A DNA stretch of 64,000 nt from Octopus sinensis (GCF_006345805.1 NC_043016.1:26164001-26228000); one strand, 5' to 3'. Shown: positions 8,963 through 62,900, numbered from the stretch's first letter. Notes: generated by a model not told the origin, from the sequence alone. Numbers and translations: made by a program.

Positions 8963-10262
8963 AGAGGATATGTGAAGACTAGAAAAAAATGAAACTACAA
9001 TTTTCCATTAAATGAATAGTGTATGCATGAATGGCAAAAGTACAAATGTGTTTGAGAAAAAAATTAGGTACATAAGAGGAATTAGGTGTGATGTGCAAAA
9101 CTGTTTGTAAGGATTAAGAAGTGCCAGTTATTTAGAGTAGATGGACCTTGACATAGAGGGGAAACTCAGAAAGACAGGATGAAGTGGTGAAGGCTGATCT
9201 TAGGATTGCAAAACACAGAGGTGACAAAGGACCAGGATGACTGGTGATACGTGGGGTGCTCAAGAACACCTGTTCATCATCTTTCTGAAAGTGAGATTTT
9301 GGAAGCTAAATGTAATATATTGGAGGGGATGTAAAAAACAAGCAGGTGATGACTATACAGATTGAGTAGAAATGATTGATGGTTGTGTGATGACTAACCG
9401 TACAGAAAGGGATGAAGAGCAGCAGAATCACGATCACTATTTTGATGCCCACTTTTTCATGCTACTTGATTGGATGGAATTTCTTAATGCAGGTTTTCCA
9501 TTGCCAGCCTTCACCTGTTTCAGGTAAGATTTCTCCATGACTAGATATTTCCATGAGACCCTTGCTCAATTTCCTCCTCAAAATATTTCTGCCATCTCTC
9601 TATCACTTGCCCAATTGTAGTAGTCATTCAATGAGAGCAGAATTGTATATTTTCTGTGATATTGTTATTGTTTCTCCCTACCTTGAATCACTTCACTTGA
9701 CATCCAACCTTCACTCTTAATATTGTCCCTCTCTACTCACATTTTACTTTGATCATCCTTCTCTGTTACTGAATTAAATCTCTTCCACCACCATACTTTT
9801 CTCATTCTCCCTATGTATTACATCAGCTTTTCTCCTCACACTCTTGCAATCTATTTGCCTATTCACCTGTGTCATCTCTCACTTCTTCCTCTGCCTACTG
9901 TATTATTATTACCAATAAGTACAGGCAAGACTGTGTAGTAAGAAGTGTACTTCCCAACCATATGGCTCCAGTTTCAGTCCTACTATATGGCACCTAGAGA
10001 AAGTATCTTCTACTACATCCCCCAGGCTTGGCAGAGCCTTGTGAGTGGATTTTGTAGACAGAAACTGAAAGAAGCTCATTATATAATATATATATATAAT
10101 ATTTATTATCTTGTTATATTTAATATCTTGTACTTTACTTAATCATTGGTATATGTTTTTAATCTTATATTTAATTTTTTTCTATAGGATGTAATTTTTT
10201 TTTATATGGTATAATTTATTTTTCATTTTTGAATTGATAAAAGGTGTTTTTTTTCTAATTTA

Positions 10263-10290
<28 letters not shown>

Positions 10291-10294
<4 letters not shown>

Positions 10295-10640
10295 ACTTGT
10301 TTCAGTCATTTAACTGCGGCCATGCTGGAGCACCGCCTTTAGTCGAGCAAATCGACCCCGGGACTTATTCTTTGTAAGCCCAGTACTTATCTATCGGTCT
10401 CTTTTGCCGAACCGCTAAGTGACGGGGACGTAAACACACCAGCATCGGTTGTCAAGCAATGCTAGGGGGACAAACACAGACACACAAACATATACACACA
10501 CACTTATATATATATATATATGACAGGCTTCTTTCAGTTTCCATCTACCAAATCCACTCACAAGGCATTGGTCGGCTTGGGGCTATAGCAGAAGACACTT
10601 GCCCAAGATGCCACGCAGTGGGACTGAACCCGGAACCATG
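10291..10640 (-). mobile_element. SINE family A, head truncated
   Basis: Reverse complement of the family A body and tail. Confidence 0.85.
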
Positions 10641-11454
10641 TATCTATATATATATATATACTATATGTTTTATGTCTACTACCTAGCAAATCTACAGTTG
10701 TTTGGGATTTGAGGTGTCCGGAATATTTGCAATTTTATTAATTTAGATTCGATATCCTCCTTATCTCACAGCAAATTTGGTAACAACACAGAGGGGCCAC
10801 AAAGAAAAGTACACACTGAAATCCTTGAATGTTTCCACAAATCCTTTAAGCATGATGTTTTGTTCGTAAAATATACAATACAGTAGTGAAGTTTGTTTAA
10901 TTAATTTTAGTAATCATAGACTCCTTCATTGGCTCAGAAATTATTATTTACATTATATATGTGAAATTCCTGAGTGTCCACAAAAATTCTAAAGTTGCCA
11001 TTTTAAGTCTACAAAACATACCATCAAACAGTAATTAAACTCAGGTTAATTAACCTAGGTAGTCACTTTATTTTTTTACCTGTTTCATTAAATTACAACA
11101 TTGCCTTGAAGAATTTTGTCATATCAGGGATAAACACACACACATATACATATATATGAGAAAAACAGCATTAAAAACCAAGGCAGATATCAATAAAGTA
11201 TCAATAAAGTGCTCAGTATTAAAAGAATTTGCTTAACAATATTCAACAAACAGATACCAGTAAATCTAAGTAGAGTACAAATCCCAGGTAAATCCTCATG
11301 CATGACAGGTAAATCCAAATATCCGGCGGTAGAATTTCGAGAAATTCAGAGTATTTGACAACAAAAAATGTGTAAAGAGAAAATTACATTTTTATTAAAG
11401 ATCCCACCTTATAAAGCCAACAATTGTTTCTATTGCATTAACACACACACACAC

Positions 11455-13465: not shown

Positions 13466-13513
<48 letters not shown>
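13466..13513. repeat. (ATT)n microsatellite at the PLE end
   Basis: About 16 perfect ATT units abutting the PLE terminal repeat. Confidence 0.95.
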
Positions 13514-13514
<1 letters not shown>

Positions 13515-13597
13515 GTAATTGTTAAAGAGGACAACAAACATTAAGGCAAGACAAACATCTCAAGTCATTTATATTAATGTTATTGGAAAAATTCAAA

Positions 13598-13653
13598 GTC
13601 TTACAGTTGTTTCTGAGATATCCCAAAGTATGGGATATTCTGTCATCGGAGAC
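13598..13653 (-). ncRNA. Degenerate minimal type-I hammerhead ribozyme motif in the 3' pLTR
   Basis: Minus strand: gtct-CCGATGA-(atatccca/tgggatat stem)-GAAAC-aact-GTA-agac. Core has U4>C and lacks a clean G10.1-C11.1 pair. Confidence 0.5.
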
Positions 13654-14033
13654 AAATAGGGAAAATGTGAGGAATATAGATTAATGAAACAGTGACATAG
13701 AGGACAGGAGAACGAGAATAAAGAAATGAAGAAAAATAGGAAAAAAGAAGCATAAAAGTTCACAGTTCAACTTTCTGATAGTGTAGATGTCAGTCCATAC
13801 ATCCTTAGGTGCAATCCTGTGTAAATCCATGTATGGTTATAGCCTTAATAGTGTAAATATCCATAGAATAAATGTGAATGTATCAAAGTTTTGAAAGAGA
13901 ATGGCAGCAGAGGTGGCTATTAAGGAATAAAGAGGAAAAAAATAAATAGAAAGAGAGTAAGGTATTGGTAGGGAAGAAGGAGGTACAGAAAGTGGAGGAA
14001 GAAAGCAAGGATAAAATAGGGTATGTAGAAATA

Positions 14034-14950: not shown

Positions 14951-15364
14951 TCTATTATAGCCCAAGAAAGTTTATATTGCGTTTTTCTATTAATTAGATG
15001 GTGTACATGACTGGCTAGTGATATGGAATTGCTATGCTCTTTGCTCTTTATATTTAAATGAGTTTATATGTACAGAATATTTTTGTTTAAAATTAGTGGT
15101 TGATCCAATATAGTAGCTATTGGAGTTATTTAATATGTTGTGGACTGTGTATTAGTATGCCACGTTGAATCTTCTGCACGGAGCTTGCAGTGGGCAGTCA
15201 GTCCCAGATCTGCAGTTGCAGCTATCTGTTCTAGGATGGTTAGTTGGAGAGAGGGATGAAGGAATGCTACTAGCAGATGAGCTAAAGGCTAGGGTTGTAT
15301 CAGGTGATGATATTGTTGTTATCATTGCCATTATTTCTATTATCAATATCATTGCCATCATTAC

Positions 15365-15418
<54 letters not shown>

Positions 15419-17502
15419 CATTATTATTGCCATTATTGTTATCACCATCGCTATTATAATTATTATTATTATTACTATTCGTAGTAATAGTAGCAGTGGT
15501 AGTCGTGGTGGTGTTAGTGTTATTATTATTGTAACTATTAGTAGTAGCACTTGTGGTGAGTGTTAGTAATAGTATTATTTTCGGTAATGGTAATATTGCC
15601 ATTGGTGGTAGTATCAGTATTGTTGCTAGTATTATTAGTAGTTGTAGTGGTTATAGTATAATTAGTACTGTTAGTATCAGTATTCCTATTAGTATTGGCA
15701 TTAGTATCAACTATGTGTCGATTTTCTTCCAAGGTGGCGTCTATATTATGTATGTTTAAGTTATTTAAAGTGTTAGTGCCGGGGTTGTTGGATATATTAT
15801 TGTGATTGATGTTAATGTTTTTGTTATGTAGGTCTATGGTAGGGTTGTATGCATTTGGATAGTAAGAGCTAAGTTTATGTTTGTTAAATGAAGTGATAAT
15901 AGATTCTATATTTGGAGTAGAGGAATAGAATAATTTTAAAGTGGGTCTGTTAAAGATTGAATGATAATTGTGGTTACATGGGGAATTAGACCCTACTATT
16001 TTAAAGAATGCTTTAGCAAGGCCATTAACATTTAAAGATGTGTACCAGAGAATATATCTCCCACCGTTTTTATTTGGCTAATTTGAGGATGTGTAATTCC
16101 TAGTGCATGTTAGATTAGAGCTGGAGGGTTTGGTGTTAGTATTCTTAAATTGTTATGTATATGGGTGGCAGGTGGGCGAGATTGTATAATTATAGTGGGG
16201 GGTTTTGGGTATCCAATATGTGGGCGCGCTCCTCTAGGGTTAAGCTCAGAGAGCTGTTCTTTAAATCTCGTGTTGGTTATAAATCTAATCTTCTGCGAGA
16301 AACCACTTGTAGCTACAACTTGGTCGTAGTAAGTGGCGTAGTTATTGAAGATTTTCTCGGTGGCAGATAGATCGGATATTCTGATGGACATGCCTTTGAC
16401 TAAACTCTTGAAAGTAAATTTATGGTGGCTAAATTTATTGATGTACTTAAGGTATTGATTGGGTTCATGATATGGGAAGTAAAGTAAAGAGTTTAAATCT
16501 AACGCAACATCTAGAAAGTTTTCTGTCTTGTAAAAGTTTTCAAAAGAGACTGATAAGTTAAAGCCAGCAAAGAATTTACATAAGAGATTTCTACTTCCTT
16601 TTAATGCAAATTTTGTTAGGCCTGTTGCAATTAACAATGCATCACCTCTATATAAACCTCTTTTGATGTGGGGGAATTGCATGTAGAGCTGTTGAAGGTG
16701 GTACAACCTGACTAGATCTGTGACCTGAGTAGAATCGGATGAGCCCATGATTATATCAAAGAAATTGTTTCTATTAATATTGAGGTTAGCATGGGACCAA
16801 AGCTTATTATCGAAGGTGATGAGAATCTTCTTGGCAGATAGAATTACATCAATTTTTAAGGAGGTTATGTTGGTTAAGTTTTTAGCTAGAGTCAGAGCGT
16901 CTTTAAGGAGAATTGGTGATATGAAAGCGTAGTAGTTGTTGATGTCAAATTGTAGGAGCGAGGAAGTGTTTTGTTTTGAAGCAGGTGGAACCAGGTGATG
17001 ACCTTGCCTGTGCAGGACCATAAGTTTATGTTTAGCTTCTTTCTAATAGTAGGTATAATTCTATCTAGTATATTTTGCTAAATCAGATTTGGTGGGTCAG
17101 ATGAGTCTTATAGAGCGTTTAGTTGAGAGGTCTGGTTTATGGTCCTTCAGACTGAAGTGTAGGGCTCTGGGTTGCAGGATTCCTTTCGGTCATCAACTTT
17201 AATTGTATTTACAAGCTTGCATTGATTGGTGTTGACCATGGGGCTATCCTATAGGATTTGTGTAGCTGCTTCTTAATAAATACAATATGTTCCATTGAGG
17301 AATATATTGAATTTATTAAGGCTATAACCATACATGGATTTACACAGGATTGCACCTAAGGACTGACATCTACACTATCAGAAAGTTGAACTGTGAACTT
17401 TTATGATTCTTTTTGCCTATTTTTCTTCATTTCTTTATTCCCTTTCTCCTGGCCTCTATGTGATCATTTCATTAATCTGTTCCCCTCACATGTTCCCTAT
17501 TT

Positions 17503-17777: not shown

Positions 17778-17805
17778 TTTGTATGTGTGTATATATATAT
17801 ATATA

Positions 17806-17872
<67 letters not shown>

Positions 17873-18128
17873 ACATATATATATGTGCATATGTATGTAT
17901 ACATATATATATGTGCATATGTATGTATACATTTATATATGTGCATATATATGTATACATATATATATATGTGCATATATATGTATACATATATATATGT
18001 GCATATATATGTGAATATATATGTATACATACATATATATATATGTGCATATACATGTATACATATATATGTGTGTGTGTGTGTATGCATATATATATAT
18101 GTATACATATATGTGTGTGTGTGTGTGC

Positions 18129-18160
<32 letters not shown>
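17778..18160. repeat. Compound (TA)n/(TATG)n/(TG)n microsatellite
   Basis: Directly visible; it accounts for the Y/I/M/H-rich ORFs in the track. Confidence 0.95.
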
Positions 18161-18161
<1 letters not shown>

Positions 18162-18167
18162 AGTATT

Positions 18168-18584
18168 TACTCTTTACTCTCTCTTTTACTTGTTTCAGTC
18201 ATTTGACTGCAGCCATGCTGGAGCGCCGCCTTTAGTCGAGCAACTCGACCCCGGGACTTATTCTTTGTAAGTCCAGTACTTATTCTATCGGTCTCTTTTG
18301 CCGAACCGCTAAGTCACGGGGACGTAAACACACCAGCATCGGTTGTCAAGCAATGCTAGGGGGACAAACACAGACACACAAGCATACACGCACACACATA
18401 TATATACATATATATATACATAAATACGACAGGCTTCTTTTCAGTTTCTGTCTACCAAATCCACTCACAAGGCATTGGTCGGCCCGGGGCTATAGCAGAA
18501 GACACTTGCCCAAGATGCTACGCAGTGGGACTGAACCCGGAACCATGTGGTTGGTTAGCAAGCTACTTACCACACAGCCACTCC
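18168..18584 (-). mobile_element. Full-length SINE family A
   Basis: Reverse complement of 3839-4226 with low divergence. Confidence 0.88.
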
Positions 18585-25789: not shown

Positions 25790-26425
25790 GTAACTTGATT
25801 TAGAAACATAATAATTAATAGTATTAATTACCTTTTGTGCTTAGTTAATTAACATTTTACAACTTATTAGTAAATTATCTGAACTACATAATAATTGCTG
25901 ACATTAATTACTATGTTTGCTTAATTGAACAACTATTACTGGTAGACTGATTGAGCCACACAATTGTTACTTTTATTAATTACCATGAATGATTAATTGA
26001 TTAATTAACATTGTACAGCTATTATTAATGTATTAATTAAGGTGGCAAATGAGCAAAGTCATTACCACACAGTGCAGAATGCTCAGTGACATTTCTTCCA
26101 GCACTTTATGTTCTGAGTTCAAATGGCAGTGTAATCAACTTTGCTTTTCATTCTTTCAGAGGTTATTAAAATAAGTACCAGTTGAGCACTAGTGTTGCTG
26201 TAATCGACTAGACCCCTCCTTCAAAGTTGCCGGCCTTGTGCCAAAATTAGATAAAGATTATTTAGTATATTGACTGAGTTACATGATAATTACTGATATC
26301 AGTTACAATGTATAATCAATTAACATTGAACTGCTAATATAGGTAGATTGACTGACGTATTAATAACAGATATTAACCATCTTGGTTTATTAATTAATTA
26401 ACATTGAACAGCTATTATTGGTAGA
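25790..26425. repeat. Degenerate tandem array of about five 70-80 bp units, interrupted by a SINE
   Basis: Recurring ttaattaacattgaacagctattattggtag core at about 25846, 25921, 26001, 26318 and 26395. Confidence 0.65.
26039..26250 (+). mobile_element. Deu/Nin-like SINE, diverged
   Basis: ctgagttcaaat..actttgcttttcattcttt..aataagtaccagttgagcact. Confidence 0.7.
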
Positions 26426-26573
26426 ACACACTGTGGTCCAGGACATTGATTGTTGGTCATTGCTTGGATCATCTGGGTGAAAAATTGATTCATCTGATTT
26501 TGAATCAAGGTACACTGCTGGACATTGAGTTGTGGAATGTTCGGTGGTAAATTAATCACCACACCTCGACCAC
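26398..26573 (-). CDS. Exon 3 of the secreted chitin-binding protein (GGRGVVINLPPNIPQLNVQQC..QCPGPQCVLPIIAVQC*)
   Basis: Long pyrimidine tract ctgtttcatttctgtctctctttctctctatccatacag, phase 1, 58 codons to TAA, Gln/Asn/Pro-rich like exon 2. Confidence 0.8.
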
Positions 26574-26717
26574 CTGTATGGATAGAGAGAAAGAGAGACA
26601 GAAATGAAACAGTATTAACCCTTTAACATTTAAACCAACCATATCCAACCAAAATATTCTTCCTGTTTTATGCTCAAACTAACCAGGTCCTGCTTTTCAT
26701 ACCTACCCTACAATCAT

Positions 26718-26950
26718 TTCATTTAACGTCCGCTTTCCATGCTAGCATGGGTTGGACGATTTGACTGAGGACTGGTTAACCAGGCTCCAATCTGATCTGG
26801 CAGAGTTTCTACTGCTGGATGCCCTTCCTAAGGCCAACCACTCCAAGAGTGTAGGGCCAGTCTGGCGGTACGGGGAATGGACACGCTCAAAAAGGTGTTT
26901 TTTACGTGCCACCTGCGCAAGAGTCAGTCCAGAAGCACTGGCAACGACCT
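26718..26950 (-). mobile_element. RTE 3'UTR copy inserted into a TTAA MITE fragment (26616-26717)
   Basis: tttaacgtccgctttccatgctagcatggg..ggatgcccttcc follows ttaaccctttaacattt. Confidence 0.75.
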
Positions 26951-27289
26951 CACTTGAAGTGTAAAATAAGCAAACACTTGATTCGTTAGTACAAGGGATT
27001 CTGGGATATCTGGTGTTTCAACATTGGATGTGTCTCATCAGCCAGAAGACCCCTCCCCTTTCCAAGTCTAATGAATCTAACCAGAACCAATGGCCTTGGT
27101 TACAATTCTAGCAAACAAAACTGATTACTGATCCATGCTGATATCTGTCAGCCAATAATGAATTGTTATATGCATGGTAAAAATCAAGAACCAAAATGAT
27201 GACTTGCATATCCTCTTGTGACGAAACACAACAGTGATTAGTATAGTCACGTTCAAACCAGCCGGAATGTATTAAGAATGATTATGCTA

Positions 27290-27717
27290 AGGTAGATGCT
27301 GCTGCTGCTTGTTTGTTTGTTTATTGAGCGAAGCGGTCTTCGTCCCAGAGCTCGCAAGATCGCGCCTCAGAATTGCCTGTAGTGGGAGAAGTCCAAAACG
27401 TGGTCCTTTGCTATTCGTAAGACCCAATAAAGAGAAAGCAGGTCGACCCTCGACACCGAGAGCATCGATGGATGGATGAATGTGCATCCAGCCTCAGCAG
27501 TCGCGTAGGAAGTCGGGGACAAGAAACAGGAAGAAGAGTGAGAGAAAGTTGGAGCGAAAGAGTACAACAGGGGTCGCCACCACCCCCTGCCGGAGCCTCA
27601 TGGAGCTTTAGGTGCTTTCACTCAATAAACACACACAACGCCCGGTCTGGGAATCGAAACCGCGATCCTCCGACCGCGAGTTCGCTGCCCTAACCACTAG
27701 GCCATTGCACCTCCACA
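27290..27717 (-). mobile_element. Young CpG-rich tRNA-derived SINE in intron 2
   Basis: Minus strand: A box tggcctagtgg, B box ggtttcgattcc, body gtttattgagtgaaagcacctaaagctcc, short-repeat tail. Confidence 0.8.
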
Positions 27718-28031
27718 CTACTGCTGCTATTGATGTTGTTATTGTTGCTATTACTACTGCTGCTGCTGCTGTTTTTGCTATCCCATGACTGATCAGGCTT
27801 ATTATCAAAGATATTCCAGAACTATTACACTTTTACTCTTTTACTTGTTTCAGTCATTTGACTACAGCCATGTTGGCTAGCTATATTTTGAGGTAGATTT
27901 GATTTCTGTTTCTCGTTGATAAAACAACCAACAAGAGGCTCTGTCATTGGCTAGTTGACATTGTTGATAATGATGATGTTTATTAAGTAAACAGTGGTTG
28001 GGAAAAATAAAAAAAGAAAGGAAGAATTTAC

Positions 28032-28340
28032 CTTGTCCTGGTACTACTGGATTGAAATTGTTTCGTATTCCTGCACCGCCACCATTATTAGGTTGACATT
28101 GCCAAGCGCCTGGCTGAGGCTGAAAGTTCCGTCTTTGGTCATTGCAGAATACATTAGCATCTGCATCACATAGTGTGCGGGCATAGTCAAACTGCTGCCC
28201 TTCTGCACATCTGTCTCTTACAGGGAGGCAGTTGTTACAACGCCAGAACATAGTGCAGCCTGTACTGGCAAAATCTGGGAAAATTCCATTGGGTGCAGGA
28301 CAAACAAAATTAGCCTGAGCTTTCACTTGGGCAAAATATC
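28032..28340 (-). CDS. Exon 2 of the secreted chitin-binding protein: ChtBD2 / peritrophin-A (CBM14) domain
   Basis: Acceptor ttctttttttgcag, donor aag|gtaaat, 309 nt, phase 1-1. Cys spacing CX14CX5CX9CX12CX7C with conserved F/W/F aromatics. Confidence 0.92.
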
Positions 28341-28524
28341 CTGCAAAAAAAGAATATGGATTATGTATGTGTACTTAGGAATTTTTTTTTTTACATTTTT
28401 CAACTTCTATTTAGATATTAAAAGTTTTTTTCACAAATTTTCTTAGGAAATTATTTTAAGAATATAATCATCCATGCATATCATAAAGAATTAAGTTATG
28501 TCATGCGATATCAACATCGTTATT

Positions 28525-29290
28525 GTCATGGCTGGATGCCCTTCCAAAAATGTAGCGGGTTTTTTTTACGTGCAATTGGCACAGATACTATTGACCTTAC
28601 AGCAGTATCGGCCATGACTACAGTCTCACTTGGCTTTACAGGTCTACACGAGCACAGTATATTGTCAAAGGTCACTTGTGACTGCATCCACGAAGCCCAA
28701 CACTTGAATGGTGTATTTTATGTGCCACCAGTAGGGGTGCCCATTAGACAGCGCTAGCATTGGCCACAACTACGATTTTACTCGGCTTGACAGGTCTTGA
28801 CAAGCACAGCATATCACCCAACATTTGAAGGGCCAGTTACATGACATTGACATCAGGTCTTCTCAAGCATAGCATATTGTTGCTAGTCATAACCTCTGTG
28901 AGGCTCAACATTCGAAGATCATGCTTCACTACCTTGTCCCATGTCTTCTTGGATCTACCTCTTCCACAGGTTTCCTCAACCATTAGAGTGCAACACTTCT
29001 TCACACAGCTGTCCTCATCCATACACAACACATGACCATACCAGTGCAGTTGTCTTTCTAGCACACCACATCTGATGCCTCTTATGCCCAACTTTTTCTC
29101 AGGGCACTTACACTCTGAGTGAGAGGCCCTTTTTTACCAGTAGAGGTAGGAGCTCTCTGAACTTTGCCCAGCCTATTCTTATTCTAGCAGTATGCTCTCA
29201 GAGCATCCACCCTCGCTACTGACTTGGTCATCTAGGTAACAGAAGCTATCAACTACTTCTAGTTTTCCCCATAGCATATGATGGATTCAA
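28525..29290 (-). mobile_element. RTE LINE 3' end (ORF C-terminus plus 3'UTR)
   Basis: ERQLHWYGHVLCMDEDSCVKKC..GRGRSKKTWDKVVKHDL (28837-29091), continuing into the ggaagggcatccagc UTR. Confidence 0.88.
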
Positions 29291-29959
29291 TTTTCTGTAC
29301 ATTTTTAATGTTAATTGTACCTGTGCACTTTTCACACACAAAAACTATCTTCCTCTGATATTGCTGCATGTCTGTGTATATATATATATATATTTATATA
29401 TATGATGGACTTCTTTCAGTTTCCACTCACAAAGTTTGGTTGGCCCAAGGCTATAGCAGAAGACACTTGCCCAAGGTGCCATGCAGTGGGACTGAACCCC
29501 AGAACCATGTGGTTGAGAAGCAAGCTTCCTACCACACAGCTACACCTGCACCTATATAAGTGTTTAAGTTAAAAAAAACCCAGCTCATAGCTGTCAGTCA
29601 CAAGAGAATATGACCTGGTAACATGTATCATACATTTAGATATTCATATTGTCATGAGCAGACATAGACACCTTCTTGGTTCTGACATATCTCTTGACTT
29701 GTTGAAAATGAATACCAGCCACCAGCAGTCAAATAGGTTGGCATTCATTTTCAACCAAGTAACTGAAGCAATATGAAATGAAGCACCTTCTCCAAGGACA
29801 CAACATTGCCCAATCCAAGAACTGAACCTATGACCTTATGTTCATGAGCCCAACACCCTACCCACTGGACCATAAGCAATAGTCTGAAAAAGCTTCTTTC
29901 TTTGTTATTTCTAAAAAAAAAGCCAACTACTGTTTCAATATTTCTGTAGTGGACAACCT

Positions 29960-30240
29960 GCCATGTGAAAAGCATCCAGTCTACACTGTAAAGTGGTTGG
30001 CATTAAGAAGGGTAACTAGCTGTAAAAACCATGCCAAAACAGACCTTGCCAGTGCTGGTGCCACATAAAAAGTACCCCGTAAGGTGATTTGTGCAAGGAA
30101 GGGCATCCAGCCACAAAAACCATGCCAAAACTGACAGTGAAACCTGGCATAGTCCTCTAGCTTGCTAGTTCCTGCCAAGCTGTCCAACCCATGCCAGCAT
30201 GGAAAATGGATGCTAAATGATGATAATGATGATGATGGTG
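29960..30240 (+). mobile_element. RTE 3'UTR copy
   Basis: aagggcatccagcc..ctgtccaacccatgccagcatgg..gatgatgatg. Confidence 0.75.
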
Positions 30241-30692
30241 ATATTAAACTTCTTTGATGTAAACACTGGCTTCATATGTTTATTTTACTAATCCCAATGG
30301 GATGAAAGATAGAGCAAGCTAACTAACAGCTGTAGGGCTTTTAAATCAGGGTTAAGGTTAAGGTTAGAGTTAATGATAACATTATTTAATGAGTGGAGAA
30401 TTAAAAAAATGAACTAAACATAAATATGAAGCATGGTAAAAAAAATATGATATTTAACAATGCTTAATATTTTATCTATTTATTTTCATTTTCATTTTTT
30501 TTTCTTTCCCCATGTTTCAAGCATGAGAAATTTTTTTAAATATATGGAAAACATGTTAGTCATCGACTAATATATTTTCTTTCCCTGCCCACAGAATGAT
30601 TTCTAGTTAACTTTTTAATTCTCATTATAAGTAACATGTTAACATTAGATTAACTACTGCTGTTGTTCTTGTTTAGCCCCCAAACACACATA

Positions 30693-30937
30693 TACTCTTT
30701 TACTTGTTTCAGTTATTTGACAATGGGCATGCTGGAGCACCGCCTTTAGTCAAGCAAATTGACCCCAGGACTTATTCTTTGTAAGCCTAGTACTTATTCT
30801 ATCGTTCTCTTTTGCTGAACCACTAAGTCATGGGGACGTAAACACACCAGCATCGGTTGTCAAGCGATGTTGGGGAGACAAACACAGACACACAAATATA
30901 TACACACACACACATACATATGTATATGTGTATGTAT

Positions 30938-31008
<71 letters not shown>

Positions 31009-31185
31009 CATACATAATATACATATATATATACATATATATGACGAGCTTCTTTCACTTTCCGTCTACCAAATCTACTCACAAGGCTTTGGTCAGCCCA
31101 AGGCTATAGTAGAAGACACTTGCCCGAGGTGCCACGCAGTGGGACTGAACCCAGGACTACTTACCATACAGCCACTCCTACACCT
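30693..31185 (-). mobile_element. SINE family A with a long (CA)n insert
   Basis: Reverse complement of the family A consensus. Confidence 0.85.
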
Positions 31186-31279
31186 ATGGTCAGAAAAATT
31201 TAAATATTGATTATCTCATCTTTTTTTCTCTTTTATCTCCAGTGTTTATTCACCAATGTATACCTCTTTTTGTCTTTTA

Positions 31280-32151
31280 TTAACCTTTTAGCATTCATAT
31301 TACTCTGTTGAATGTAATGTTTATCTATTCACATTGTTCTTGAATTAATCATTAATCATGTAGTTTCCAGATTTCAATGATGTAGTTGTTTATTTTTAGA
31401 ATGACATTGTAAGGTAGGTATGAGAGGTTGGATTAGGCTGGTTTGAATATTAAAACTGGTAGAATATTTTAGCTGGATAGTCATTTATTCTTCATTTATT
31501 GTTTCAGTTATTCGACTGCAACCATGCTAGAGCACCACCTTGAAGAGTTTTTAATTGAAGAAATTTACCCCAAGACTTATTCGTAAGCTTAGTACTTATT
31601 CTATCAGTGTCTTTTGGTGAACTCCTAAGTTACAGGGACATAAACACACCAGCATTAGTTGTCAAGTGATGGTGGAGAGGATGACAAACACAGACACACA
31701 TAAATATATACCTATGTGTATATATACATATTAGCGAGCTTCTTTCAGTTTCTTATTTCTTTACTGACCACAAGGAGCTACACACAGAGGGGACAAACAA
31801 GGACAGACAAATGGATTAAGTCGATTATATCGACCCCAGTGCATAACTGGTACTTATTTAATTGACCCCGAAAGGATGAAAGGCTAAGTCGACCTCGGCA
31901 GAATTTAAACTTAGAACGTAGCAGTAGACAAAATACCGCTAAGCATTTCGCCTGGCGTGTTAACGTTTCTGCCAGCTTGCTGTTTACCAAATTCACACAG
32001 AAGGCTTTGGTTAGCCTGAGGCTATAGGAGAAGACACTTGCCCAAGGTGCCACACAATGGGACTGAAAGAAGAACCATGTGGTCGGGAAGCAAGCTTCTT
32101 ACCAGTCAGCCATACCTGTGCCTACGGTCAATTTAAATGCTAAAGGGTTAA
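31280..32151. mobile_element. TTAA MITE containing SINE A (31497-32122), which contains a Deu/Nin-like SINE (31753-31980)
   Basis: ttaacctttta..aaagggttaa termini. SINE A is split exactly at cttctttcagtttc|tgtttaccaaattcac. Confidence 0.8.
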
Positions 32152-32715
32152 GATTTGGTTGAGACCTGACTGTTATTTCTAGAAGTGTGAACACCCATGT
32201 AGGAACTTTTTTGTTGACTCTTATTATATGCAATGAATGAAATGGCAATATACAATAATGACAACTTAAAAGCACATGTACCTCAGAAAGACTTCATACA
32301 TGTACCAGTATCCACATGCCAAAAAACAAAGTATAAAATGAGACAGAGCCTTCTTTTGTAATATCATCAAAATTCCAAGCTCTTAAGCCTTTAGTATTCA
32401 GATTTAAGTATCAAATATAATACTTATTTATCCACATTAATTTGAATTAATAATAAATTATCTTGCAGCTTCAAGATTTCAATGATGAGATTCTTTATAT
32501 TTTAGACTAACATTGTGAGGTAGGTATGAGAGACTGGATCTGGTCTGGTTGAACATAAAGCAGGTAGAACTCATTCTTCTCTAGTCTGACCACGACTGAT
32601 TTCTTCCAGAGAGAGGGGGATGGGGAGGGATTAGAAGGACAGAGAGTTAGAGGAAGAGAGAGGTGGGAGAAGAGTGAGGTAGAAGAAGAGATAGAGAGAA
32701 TGAGAGAGATGTATG

Positions 32716-32759
<44 letters not shown>

Positions 32760-33941
32760 TAGACACATAGATGGCTAAGCAGACAAAGCAGACAGAGAAT
32801 GAAAATCAGCACCAGTGCTGGTCTATATGTATTGACACTTCGCCCCCACAAAAAAAGTGAATCGGTAAAGTGGGCCTCAGCAAGATTTAAAGCCAGTGCA
32901 AAGTGCCAGGACAAACACTGCTAGATATTCTATCCAACACTATAACAATGGTAACCTGAGAGGGACACAAAGCCATCTTTGGGTGCTCGTTGGCTTGAGT
33001 GATGCATTTCTGTATACATTCCTCCTACTCAAAAAGGATCCATAAGTCTCCAGACTACCTGTGCTATAGCACCCTTGGTACATAGTTTACAATAGTACTA
33101 GTAGAACATTAACTCTCTGTTACCATGTTTCTGTGGGAATACACTGCCTTTGTTTCAATTTATTTTGAAAATAATGAAGAATTTAGTAAAAGAAATCTGT
33201 CATTATTGAGTTGACATTTGGAACTTAAATTAACATGGAATTTTGATGGACAGTTTTAATTTAGATGACTTTAAAACAGGACGTTTGTATCATAAAACCA
33301 GAAGGTAGTCACAGGCAGGTTAGTACAAAAGGGTTAAATGAGACAGCTAGGATTTTGTGATTGGTACTTGGATGTTGAATGTCTCCCACCATAATTAACA
33401 ACCAAGAATCAAAGCTTATAATGTGTGGAAAGACACCCTGTCCATTCTCACAGAATCTACCAGAGCAAACAAGACTGAGCACACTGAGAAATAAAGCAAT
33501 GACAATAATAATGATGTTGATGATGATGAATTTATTGTATAGAGTGCCTGGTGCAGTACAAAGTGAAAGAAGAAAGAGATTCAATTCTGCTATATCACTT
33601 TAATCTAGAAAGCTTTTAGTCTGTTGTTTCATAACCATTGTTGTATGCAACACATTTTAATCAATATGATTTTGAATTTGAAAAATAACAAAAAATAAAA
33701 AAGGAAAAGTAAGGAAAAAAAAATCACCATCTTATTATCATACCAGTTATTATTATCATAAGTTACAGTTTTACAAACAATATATCACCATAGCAATATA
33801 TAACAATGAACACGTTTCAGGATATCTTTTTCTCAACTTCCAAAATGTATCAGAGGACGGAGAAGTAAATCAAGTGAACAGGTATTTTATCAAGAATATG
33901 TTTTTAAAATATAAAAGAGAAAAATATCACTGCAAACTTAC

Positions 33942-33975
33942 CTGCCAGAAACAGAAGCAATATTCTGACCTGCAT
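33942..33975 (-). CDS. First coding exon of the chitin-binding protein (signal peptide MQVRILLLFLAG)
   Basis: ATG at 33975, donor cag|GTAAGT, phase 1, splices in frame to give MQVRILLLFLAGYFAQVKA-Q. A possible upstream acceptor (ttttccttag at 34006-34007) suggests a non-coding exon further 5'. Confidence 0.85.
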
Positions 33976-34249
33976 ACTAATGTAATGTAGGTTACAGTGA
34001 TTATTCTAAGGAAAATCACAAACTCCTCCAATTAAATACCGACTTAACAGGAAATGTGTTGGTTTCCTTGTTCAACTTGCCTTTTTTTCTGATGTTTTTA
34101 CTACAAATAGCAAGAAGACTAAATCTTTCAGCAAACAACTTAACACGTTTCTCTCTTTCTTGAGTGTTTATTTAGGTGTTGAAGGTTACAAAAAGGGTAA
34201 AATACCAGGCTAAATACTTTAGTGTTGTTTAGTGTTTGTCCTTCTAAGA

Positions 34250-34900
34250 TTCTGAGTTCAAAAACTGACAGGATCAACTGTAATACCAATTTCTGAGACC
34301 AACTGATTCAACTTAACTTTTTGTATTACTACAAACTGGGTGTCAGATCCAGAATTATTATTGTCAAGATTATCTCTGACTGAGAGAACAGATGACCTGA
34401 GAGAGCGGAGGTAGTGAGGTGTACACAGGGCCATCTTCTGGTTCTCATGGGCGCTATGCATGGATGCTGTATGCTAAACGAAATGACATATCAGCCCACC
34501 AACAACTTAAGTACATTCTTTTGTGGACCCCGGTGATCTGAAGATGACACATCTAAATATACACACTTAAAGCTGATCCTCAGAAGGATCATGTAATCGA
34601 ACACCATCAGCCAGATATCATTATATTGAATAAGAGAGAGAGAAATGTTGTCAGATCATTGATGTAGCCATAGCAAATGACATGACTGTTGTGAGTAAGG
34701 AGGTTGAAAAAATCACCAAGTACTCCAATTGAATGTGGAAATGGCAAGACTCTATGGAATGTGAGAGGGTAATGTAAAGGGGTACCAGTGGTGATTGGAG
34801 CACTTTGCTCAATCTCATTGAAATATCAAGATCTCTTAACTGGAAATCCCATACAGCTTTACTGGGCAGAGCACACATCTTAAGGAAAATATTATCTGTC
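34250..34900 (+). mobile_element. R4/Dong-like LINE 3' fragment (RLE endonuclease)
   Basis: HHQPDIIILNK, IIDVAIAND..KEVEKITKY, VVIGAL, TALLGRAHILRK motifs. Confidence 0.75.
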
Positions 34901-47994: not shown

Positions 47995-49520
47995 ATTAAA
48001 TCTCAGAATGAGATTGAAACAGTAATCGCTCGATAATGTAAAGTATAGAAGCCATCTTATCATGGCTAACCACTTTGGGGAGGGGCTTGTTACTGTAGCT
48101 TTATACTTATAAATAAACTTTCCGCTAATGAGGAAATCTTCAATCACCCCCCCCCCCCCATATAATAATGCCTTGAAATTAAGTGGGTTTAATATAGTAT
48201 CTACTATATACCAGATACTAAATTAAAAAGAAAGATCACAAATATTTATACTAATAATAGCATAGGTATAAGTGAACATAGGTCAATTAAATGATACTAG
48301 CACGAATCAACCGCATATTAAATGCTTTAGGCTGAGAAATCATAGGTATTATAATAATTATAAGTATTAGCCTCCTACTCCTGGGACTTCTAATACAATT
48401 AGAAATTGTAAACCCAGATTACTTGAAGTTATTTGGTTTGCCCCTCTTTCCTCACTTAGGGTTAAGAATCTACCTAGATTGTTTTTTAAAATTCTAGAAT
48501 CTAACTTCCCAAAACATCACAGATATTACACCATTTGTAATAAATCTACTGTAAAATTCTTGTACTCAGCAATGCCTAACTTAGGGACAATAATAGCTTC
48601 TATAAATAGGGGTAAAATTAAACGTATAATGAATAAGGTCAACAATAGGGTAAGTAATAATAATAATTTAGGGGAAAGAACATGCACTAATGAAATTAAG
48701 GATATAGCAAAAAATAAGGACAACAGTGCAACAAATAATAATGCTTTAGAACTAGCACTATGTACTAACAGAAATAAGGGTAAAGCTAAGGTACCAACCC
48801 CAAATACTAATGTAACAATAATTATAATCAAACTTTAATGAATTTAAAATTAGGTATATATCCCAGTCTAATGATATTAATAATGCTGGCAATATAAATA
48901 AGAACATTAAAAGTAGGTTGCCACCGAATAAAATTTGTAACTGCAGAGCTCTCAAAACCTGCCTGTTTGCAGGATCATGTCTTTGATCCAATGTTGTGTA
49001 TAAATGTATAGTTAGCATACCCAAGAGACAAAACAAGATATATATTGGCAGTACAATAGATTTCAAAAGGAGACATAGGGCCCATCTGAATTCCTTTCCA
49101 AACCCTAAATATAAGAATTCCACTACCTTAGCGGCATACATAAATAAACTTAGGGATAATAATTTGCCTTATGACCTGACATGGTCTATAATTGCGAGGG
49201 CTCCCCCATATGGTAATGGTTCTGGTAGGTATATATTGTGTATAAGGGAATCGTATCTAATCCTTAAATTATATACCACTAATATGTTAAATAAGTTCAC
49301 AGATACAATCCCCTTGTGTAGCCATAAATTTCACTCTACATTTCTAAAAACCTATAAAATTAGATCTACAAGGGAATTGAATTAGAATAATGCTTGTAGA
49401 TATAATCGTGATTCCCAAGTATTTGAATTCTTCCACTCATAGCAAACATGTGATCATATGCATTCGAGCTGTAAAACATTTTGTTAGAATATTTTTTGAC
49501 TCTGCTAGTCATTAAACAAT
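47995..49520 (+). mobile_element. 5'-truncated Neptune-type PLE
   Basis: IWFAP..FFKILESNFPKHHRYYTICNK..MPNLGTII, an Asn-rich linker, CNCR..C..GSC, VYKC..IYIGST..HLNSF (ORFs 48479-48838 and 48996-49385). 47995-48112 is homologous to 63670-63782. Confidence 0.88.
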
Positions 49521-61735: not shown

Positions 61736-62900
61736 GTCATCCCATAAGTTCTGTCCAAATTTTCAATAAAGAAAACAAGTGATAAAATGTTATATTTAAT
61801 TGAAATTTAACCATCAGTGTACTTTCCCTGATTATCTATGACTTCCTTTCATCTATTTACAAGCTTTTTAATCCATTAATGTAAAACTCTTTTGGTCTCA
61901 AAGCGAAGAACTCTAAAATGTCAGTTTCGACCTCCTCCTAGCTTGCAAAAGTTGTCCCCCAAATGATTCTGTAAACTACAAAACAAATGGTAGTCTGTAG
62001 GAGCAAGGTCAGGAGAATAAGGTGAATGAGGAATTTTTTCCCAACCAAGCTCTTCGATCTTCTGTTATGTGATCTTTGCAGTGTGGGGTTGCGCATTATC
62101 CTGATGAAACATCACTCTTTTTCGATTCACTAAAGTGGGTCTTTTTTTCTTCAAAGCTTGGTTGAAACGCTCTAATTGCTGACAGTAGACTTGAGCATTG
62201 ATTGTTGCATTAGGTGGTAATAATTCAAAGTGAATTACTCCTTTGCAATCCCACCAGATAGAGAGAAGAATTTTTTCCCCATGAAGTTCCCTTCTCGATT
62301 GTGGTTGAGCTTTTTCCCTTTTACCAAGCCATTGTTTACAGTGCTTAACATCTCGATAGAAGATCCATTTTTCGTCACCAGTCACAAATCTATCCAAAAA
62401 GGATGAAACGAGTTCACAAGAATGGAGAGAAGAGCAGATGTCAACTCGGGATTTGCAGTTGCTTTCGGACAATTCATGAGGCACCCATTTTCCAAGTTTA
62501 GGAACCTTTCCAACTTGTTGAAGATAACGATGAACATTTGTACTTTCCAAGTTGTTGAAGATGATGATGAACAGTTGTATGGTTTGAACTACGCTTTATT
62601 GCCAATTCTTCAACTGATAATGCAAGATTTTCTTCAAGTAATGCCTCAAGGAGCTTATCATCAAACTCAACTGGACATCCTGTTTGATCTTCATCTTCAA
62701 GGCTGAAATCTCCACTTCTGAATTTTGCAAGCCATCTTCTGCAAGTTCTTTCATTCAAGCATTCTTTCCCATAAACTGAGTGTATGTTTCGAGTCGCTTT
62801 GGCTGCAGGGTTTCCTTTTTTGTACTCATTAAGCATTATGCGCCTTAAGTGCTCTTTGGATACTTCCATGTTAGAAAGGGTTTTAATCAAAGAAATTTTA
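61732..62900 (-). mobile_element. DD34D mariner transposon pseudogene, one TIR visible
   Basis: MEVSKEHLRRIML, WVPHEL, VTGDEKW, HQDNA..YSPDLAPTD (34 residues); TIR tcaggtcatcccataagttctgtcc after TA. Confidence 0.92.

Follow-up and report, generated by a model that had tools for sequence, protein, structure and literature searches.

What is encoded by the three-exon gene on the minus strand of a 64,000-nucleotide (nt) stretch of the Octopus sinensis genome (GCF_006345805.1 NC_043016.1:26164001-26228000; hereafter the window, meaning the whole stretch that was analysed), and what might its product do? An earlier note, made from the sequence alone, had proposed a hidden gene whose secreted product would combine a single chitin-binding domain with a cysteine-bearing tail of no described family. 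We found that this is almost certainly a real gene encoding a secreted CBM14 protein of 172 amino acids (aa), and that the gene model was already in public records. What appears to be new here is modest: a C-terminal module conserved in coleoids, and a seventh cysteine in the domain, at a position where none of 770 other CBM14 domains has one. Cephalopods make several chitin-protein materials, including the beak, radula, sucker lining, gut cuticle, pen, cuttlebone and stylet, and few matrix proteins are known outside the squid beak.

Gene model, conservation and transcription

The structure proposed for the gene was reproduced from the sequence in all its coordinates: three exons, GT-AG splice sites, phase-1 junctions and a 172-aa open reading frame (ORF) (Table 1). 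The coding parts of the exons (34 + 309 + 176 = 519 nt) form a coding sequence (CDS) of 172 codons and a stop, and the product begins MQVRILLLFLAGYFAQVKAQANFVCPAPNG and ends IIAVQC. On the minus strand exon 1 reads ATGCAGGTCAGAATATTGCTTCTGTTTCTGGCAG, followed by GTAAGT. The donor sites are CAG/GTAAGT (exon 1) and AAG/GTAAAT (exon 2), and each acceptor consists of a polypyrimidine tract (T-rich before 28340, CT-rich before 26573) and then CAG. The RNA of exon 3 has no unusual predicted structure (z = -0.73), and tblastn of the octopus protein and of a cuttlefish homologue, described below, found no paralogue in the window. We rejected an AATAAA eight bases past the stop as a poly(A) signal because it is not conserved in O. 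bimaculoides.

The gene was not hidden. XP_029648497.1 (uncharacterized protein LOC115222446, O. sinensis) and CAI9734565.1 (O. vulgaris) are exactly the 172-aa sequence, and XP_052829431.1 (O. bimaculoides) is an orthologue that is 97% identical; all three represent the same model. Over 27.6 kb the window matches O. sinensis CM016878.1 with 100% identity. The annotated gene span on CM016878.1 is 7,578 bases, equal to the interval that the earlier note had given, and exon 1 starts at the annotated gene start in the O. sinensis record and in two further loci. The O. vulgaris record holds the correct gene model under a product name, 'chitin deacetylase 1', that is wrong. A literature search by accession numbers and sequence fragments found no paper on the octopus protein.

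The CDS and the 300 nt upstream of it are better conserved among octopuses than the introns are. O. vulgaris and O. sinensis have identical exons, and the GT-AG sites of both introns recur in O. bimaculoides. Between O. sinensis and O. bimaculoides, 12 of the 519 nt of the CDS differ (5 synonymous and 7 non-synonymous changes, with all 12 cysteines kept) and exon 3 is 96% identical at the nucleotide level, whereas alignable intron sequence is ~87-92% identical. The upstream region was aligned for O. sinensis, O. vulgaris and O. bimaculoides, with the 34 nt of exon 1 included. It contains a conserved TATA-like element, TATTTAA, at 34038-34032, which is 57-63 nt before the ATG. Between O. sinensis and O. 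bimaculoides its identity of ~97% clearly exceeds the ~90% of the introns, which suggests a compact promoter that has been conserved.

The family is transcribed in a cuttlefish and is present in both main coleoid lineages, as established by a homologue found in mRNA assembled from Sepia RNA-seq. The Sepia esculenta protein (P0002, 179 aa) is 52% identical to the octopus protein by BLASTP (E = 3.5e-45) and was the only other relative carrying the tail in our homologue searches. It sits on two assembled contigs of 1.2 kb, between which identity is 99.3%; both have a 5' untranslated region (UTR) of ~50 nt, an unbroken ORF and a 3' UTR of ~630 nt. One of its two runs, SRR25097171, is RNA-seq of whole Sepia esculenta hatchlings (PMC10571815), and the evidence for expression comes from whole cuttlefish hatchlings only. 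The residues that flank the octopus exon junctions (LAG before G(Y/F)F, and GQG before G) are contiguous in the Sepia mRNA, which lends indirect support to the octopus splice model. For Octopus itself, where only genome-derived records in the protein collection carry the ORF, the evidence for splicing comes from annotation, from conservation and from the Sepia mRNA.

The CBM14 domain, its seventh cysteine and the tail

The N-terminus has the features of a cleavable signal peptide. Residues 1-19 include an arginine at position 4 and a hydrophobic core and end at VKA/QA, and MQVRILLLFLAGYFAQVKA/QA looks cleavable when judged by eye, in agreement with the signal-like N-terminus described before. 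AlphaFold2 (AF2) predicted a helix at residues 2-17. Such a peptide would direct the protein outside the cell and leave a mature form of 153 residues.

The protein contains exactly one CBM14 (peritrophin-A, ChtBD2) domain, as had been recognised from the sequence, and no other identifiable domain. The single match to Pfam PF01607 (CBM_14) scored 28.4 bits, above the gathering score of 22.1 (E = 1.8e-6), and covered profile positions 1-53 of 53. The cysteine spacing is C25-X14-C40-X5-C46-X9-C56-X12-C69-X7-C77, with aromatic residues F43 and W44 between the second and third cysteines and F62 and Y64 between the fourth and fifth. These six canonical cysteines are invariant in an alignment of 11 sequences. 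The 150 best database matches yielded 770 CBM14 domains, of which 733 have the same spacer of nine residues between the third and fourth cysteines. The domain is 72% identical between octopus and Sepia.

The domain is confidently predicted to adopt the fold of Der p 23 and the CBM14 domain of chitotriosidase. The predicted local distance difference test (pLDDT) score from AF2 was 94-97 across the domain with an alignment of 33 sequences; this alignment was needed to recover the domain, as the pLDDT was 37 with three sequences only. When the model was compared with the Protein Data Bank (PDB) using Foldseek, the top matches were all CBM14 structures, among them Der p 23 (4zce) with a template modelling (TM) score of 0.91 and a root-mean-square deviation (rmsd) of 1.3 Å. 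Other matches were the CBM14 domain of chitotriosidase (CHIT1), Aplysia EHEP, tachycitin, Avr4 and Blo t 12. Sequence matches in the PDB were also confined to CBM14 domains.

The domain has a seventh cysteine, C49, at a position where cysteine did not occur in any of the other CBM14 domains. The spacing of the domain, the extra TGC codon (28230-28228) and the total of 12 cysteines (positions 25, 40, 46, 49, 56, 69, 77, 93, 135, 158, 163 and 172) were all reproduced from the sequence. The codon had been described as lying where such domains usually have glycine, and the counts bear this out: three residues after the third cysteine, glycine is present in 562 of the 770 domains and cysteine in none. 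An extra cysteine anywhere between the third and fourth cysteines was found in 13 of the 770, and that of the octopus protein, as unusual as had been thought, is kept in Sepia. AF2 placed C49 in the turn of the domain's central hairpin, between predicted strands 42-47 and 50-55. The mature Sepia protein has 11 cysteines (its Cys12 falls in the signal peptide); this is an odd number, and therefore at least one of them must be free or intermolecular.

Comparison with Sepia divides the tail into three parts. The earlier note had described a Gln/Asn-rich tail, and Gln and Asn do account for 33% of it (31 of 95 residues), but the tail is not uniform: the two ends are conserved and the middle is variable. 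The extension (residues 78-93, NDQRRNFQPQPGAWQC) is 75% identical to that of Sepia. Next comes a disordered, rapidly evolving linker of G/N/P/Q type (residues 94-118), in which identity falls to 36%, the alignment has 16 gap columns and the AF2 pLDDT is below 50. The C-terminal module (residues 119-172) aligns without a gap over its 54 residues, at 52% identity (BLASTP E = 2e-16 with compositional adjustment). Within and next to the module, AF2 predicted a strand at 118-122 (VVINL), a helix at 132-153 (26523-26458; pLDDT ~75) and a second strand at 167-171.

The tail had also been described as an xQC repeat. All five tail cysteines of the octopus protein do follow glutamine, an outcome reached by 24 of 200,000 shuffles of the tail. 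In Sepia the count is three of four (reached by 3,011 of 200,000 shuffles), NQC is replaced by QRC, and the cysteine of PQC (C163) is replaced by tyrosine. There is no repeated unit. The pattern, which was noticed post hoc, is a real dipeptide preference that is partly conserved.

The C-terminal module seems to be confined to coleoids, so far octopus and cuttlefish, as far as the data reach. The tail alone had no match in Pfam at E <= 10, the module had none among PDB sequences at E <= 10, and Foldseek found no match for the tail. A HMMER profile of the three coleoid sequences, searched against 1.84 billion representative proteins, gave 331 matches at E <= 0.001. We considered the best 150; tail-only matches below ~44 bits fall outside these. 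Among the 150, only the query's own cluster matched over the full length. The others matched at profile positions of ~5-129, in the CBM14 part or in low-complexity sequence next to it, and the few that extended to 113-129 did so with low-complexity linkers. When 5.8 billion clusters were searched by word index, both the protein and the three-sequence profile returned only the Octopus and Sepia proteins. Among the matches listed, then, the view that the tail belongs to no described family held, with no relative in Pfam, the PDB or elsewhere beyond the coleoid cluster.

Contrary to what had been supposed, the general kind of protein is not specific to cephalopods. The architecture of one CBM14 domain with a variable tail has been described in insects and is found widely among molluscs. 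Single-CBM14 proteins of gastropods, all uncharacterised, include Plakobranchus GFO42639.1, Elysia GFR94349.1, Littorina XP_070207714.1, Biomphalaria XP_013088837.2 and Haliotis XP_046579186.1. They share with the octopus protein a signal peptide, the subtype of their CBM14 domain (QQFDY/FDF), a low-complexity tail and, past the sixth cysteine, a C-x-[DRQ]-Q-[RL]-x-x-F extension. Unlike it, they do not have a cysteine at the position of C49, the RR of the extension or the cysteine-bearing module, and their Q/N/P/G-rich tails are much longer and cannot be aligned with it. Automatic names among these relatives are misleading: 'dentin sialophosphoprotein' in Biomphalaria, and 'vegetative cell wall protein gp1-like' and 'TANK-binding kinase 1-binding protein 1-like' in Haliotis. 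A further single-CBM14 protein of 210 aa (P0057, from SRR29346471) is 34% identical to the octopus domain and has a CDDQRGVF extension; it is without C49 and without the C-terminal module, and the word-indexed search with it found only itself.

The analogues described best are the insect CPAP1 proteins (Tribolium), which have one ChtBD2 domain and a signal peptide, are conserved essentially in the domain only, with variable flanks, and are expressed in cuticle-forming tissue (PMC3504105). The octopus protein resembles them in having a signal peptide, exactly one six-cysteine ChtBD2 domain and no other recognisable domain. It differs from them in having a seventh domain cysteine and a conserved cysteine-bearing C-terminal module, and its nearest single-domain relatives, among those whose source was looked up, are molluscan. 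The solved CBM14 structures, Der p 23 (4zce), human chitotriosidase (5hbf, 6so0), tachycitin (1dqc), Avr4 (4z4a) and Blo t 12 (2mfk), share the fold predicted for residues ~25-77; none has the tail, identity is 17-24% and the sequence E-values are weak.

Within cephalopods, the functional analogues are DgCBP-1 to -4 of the beak of the squid Dosidicus gigas, which are secreted and have been proposed to coat the chitin and to make up the scaffold of this chitinous tool (bioRxiv 10.1101/2020.01.08.899344; PMC11931252). These are multi-domain proteins: DgCBP-3, for example, has several chitin-binding domains, R&R-like in its N-terminal part and peritrophin-A-like in its C-terminal part (bioRxiv 10.1101/2020.01.08.899344). 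The octopus protein is set apart from them by their description in the literature only; no homologue of the DgCBP type turned up in the homologue searches.

Possible functions of the protein

We believe, with somewhat more confidence than doubt, that the protein is a component of the animal's own chitinous matrix. The CBM14 domain would anchor it on the chitin fibrils of an extracellular chitinous matrix, and the strand-helix-strand module and the non-canonical cysteines (C49 in its exposed turn, C93, C135, C158, C172 and, in Octopus only, C163) would form intramolecular and intermolecular disulfides. These disulfides would make a one-domain binder multivalent, or would tie the protein to other matrix proteins, so that chitin would become cross-linked. 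We propose only tentatively that the protein is a disulfide-mediated multimer or cross-linker. We are a little more doubtful of the specific form of this proposal, in which the module and the hairpin-turn cysteine would be an innovation specific to coleoids, a small new assembly domain that forms disulfides. Through it the monovalent CBM14 protein would become a covalently linked multimer or a covalent anchor, reserved for one of the chitinous structures of cephalopods; that structure may be the sucker lining, beak, radula, gut cuticle or a derivative of the shell sac. The protein is compact, which would make it an easy candidate for expression, assays of chitin binding and disulfide mapping, and it could be a building block for chitin biomaterials.

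Several observations weigh against the matrix reading or parts of it. The CBM14 fold does not guarantee a chitin ligand: a structural neighbour, Aplysia EHEP (8in3), binds polyphenols. The number of cysteines in the octopus protein is even, and therefore all of its disulfides could be intramolecular. The AF2 pLDDT of the module is ~52-76 and rests on three sequences, and its helix is moderately amphipathic on weak evidence: the hydrophobic moment of the Octopus helix was reached by 376, and that of the Sepia helix by 2,085, of 20,000 shuffles each. Cleavage of the signal peptide was judged by eye. The dN/dS ratio of ~0.38 between the O. sinensis and O. bimaculoides CDS is an estimate from 12 substitutions only. 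Lastly, a complete Octopus transcript with the ORF was not found in the protein collection, in which the Octopus records are genome-derived.

Instead of being built into a matrix, the protein could be a soluble chitin-recognition or antimicrobial lectin of the mucus, haemolymph or gut lumen, directed at fungi, parasites or prey. It is small and cysteine-rich with a single CBM14 domain, its structural neighbours include tachycitin (1dqc) and Der p 23 of the mite gut, there is a weak sequence match to tachycitin (E = 0.96), and expression in whole hatchlings would fit any secretory tissue. However, the structural similarity to tachycitin is marginal (TM 0.51, rmsd 6.6 Å), and both the length (the tachycitin chain in the PDB has 74 residues) and the cysteine pattern differ. 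In addition, a conserved module and unpaired cysteines would better suit covalent incorporation than a diffusible peptide. We consider the lectin unlikely.

The extension raises the further question of whether the protein is a precursor, cut at the dibasic RR (residues 81-82) by a protease of the prohormone-convertase type to release the CBM14 domain and a peptide of ~90 residues (NFQPQ...VQC) that would have a function of its own. Octopus and Sepia share the motif CNDQRR(N/S)F, and because the gastropod relatives show DQRE, DQRG or RQLE in place of RR, the RR is coleoid-specific, like the module. Yet a single RR with aspartate at P4 is a weak site, in the AF2 model a short, packed helix follows the domain at residues 77-83, and the extension is conserved past the RR too. 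A precursor therefore seems improbable.

It seems slightly more improbable again that the CBM14 domain binds a ligand other than chitin, as in EHEP, and that the protein is a digestive or protective scavenger. EHEP (8in3/8in6, '25 kDa polyphenol-binding protein') is among the best neighbours by sequence (E = 0.031) and by Foldseek (rmsd 1.7-1.8 over 49 columns, with 28-37% identity). But EHEP has three domains and belongs to a sea hare that feeds on algae, while coleoids are carnivorous. The octopus domain keeps the aromatic residues at their canonical positions, and most characterised CBM14 proteins bind chitin (PMC3504105).

The two remaining possibilities concern the reality and the name of the gene. 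A chance ORF, pseudogene or annotation artefact, unexpressed in Octopus, would account for the missing transcript-derived copy, but is very improbable: the ORF, all of the cysteines and the splice sites are intact in three Octopus species, conservation is higher in the CDS and upstream region than in the introns, and the Sepia homologue is transcribed. A chitin deacetylase, for which there is only the name given in the O. vulgaris record (probably transferred because insect CDA1 starts with a ChtBD2 domain), is refuted as far as a sequence can tell, as the product is 172 aa long, has no match to the NodB polysaccharide deacetylase domain of Pfam even at E <= 10 and is 'uncharacterized' in RefSeq.

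Other features of the window

The rest of the window is marked by repeats and by remnants of mobile elements, which are listed with the parts of the gene in Table 1. We found no tRNA and no Rfam family in the window.

Table 1. Coordinates of the gene, its encoded parts and other features, counted from the first nucleotide of the window
Feature	Position	Strand	Description
Upstream region, promoter-like	33976-34275	minus	~97% mean column identity
Exon 1 (coding part)	33975-33942	minus	34 nt; codons 1-11 and first base of codon 12; N-terminal part of signal peptide; ATG at 33975-33973, A at -3
Intron 1	33941-28341	minus	5,601 nt; GT...AG; phase 1; occupied by SINE-like repeats and (AC)n/(AT)n microsatellites
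Exon 2	28340-28032	minus	309 nt; symmetric phase 1-1; end of signal peptide (to 28318), CBM14 domain (28302-28144), extension NDQRRNFQPQPGAWQC (28143-28096), linker (28095-28032)
CBM14 / peritrophin-A / ChtBD2 domain	28302-28144	minus	residues 25-77; six canonical Cys and C49
Intron 2	28031-26574	minus	1,458 nt; GT...AG; phase 1
Exon 3 (coding part)	26573-26398	minus	176 nt including stop TAA at 26400-26398; end of linker and C-terminal module
C-terminal module	26562-26401	minus	residues 119-172; Cys 135, 158, 163 and 172 (the last is the C-terminal residue)
SINE-like (short interspersed nuclear element) dispersed repeats, intron 1	29405-29554, 31058-31149, 31976-32124, also 30695-30927		72-90% identical to each other
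Same SINE-like repeats elsewhere in window	10258-10641, 13512-13850, 18143-18548		
Microsatellites and simple repeats	30940-31042 and 32632-32763 (intron 1), 15152-15566, 17779-18235		including (AC)29, (AT)23 and AGAG-rich arrays, an ATT/ATC-type run (poly-Ile) and TA/TG-rich tracts, giving spurious long ORFs
Mariner/Mos1-type transposase remnant	62065-62890	minus	HTH_48, E = 3.4e-20; Transposase_1 (partial DDE), E = 2.9e-27
129-aa ORF	48996-49385	plus	borderline GIY-YIG nuclease, 22.9 bits against a cut-off of 22.6
Longest ORF of window, 303 aa	16110-17021	minus	no Pfam match; by eye, reverse-transcriptase-like motifs FDI.NYY, MGS and FLDV

The Mariner copy is frameshifted, since its HTH_48 and Transposase_1 matches lie in overlapping ORFs of different frames. 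The ORF with the GIY-YIG match may come from a Penelope-like retroelement, of which it would be the endonuclease end. Because of its reverse-transcriptase-like motifs, the longest ORF of the window is probably a decayed retroelement.

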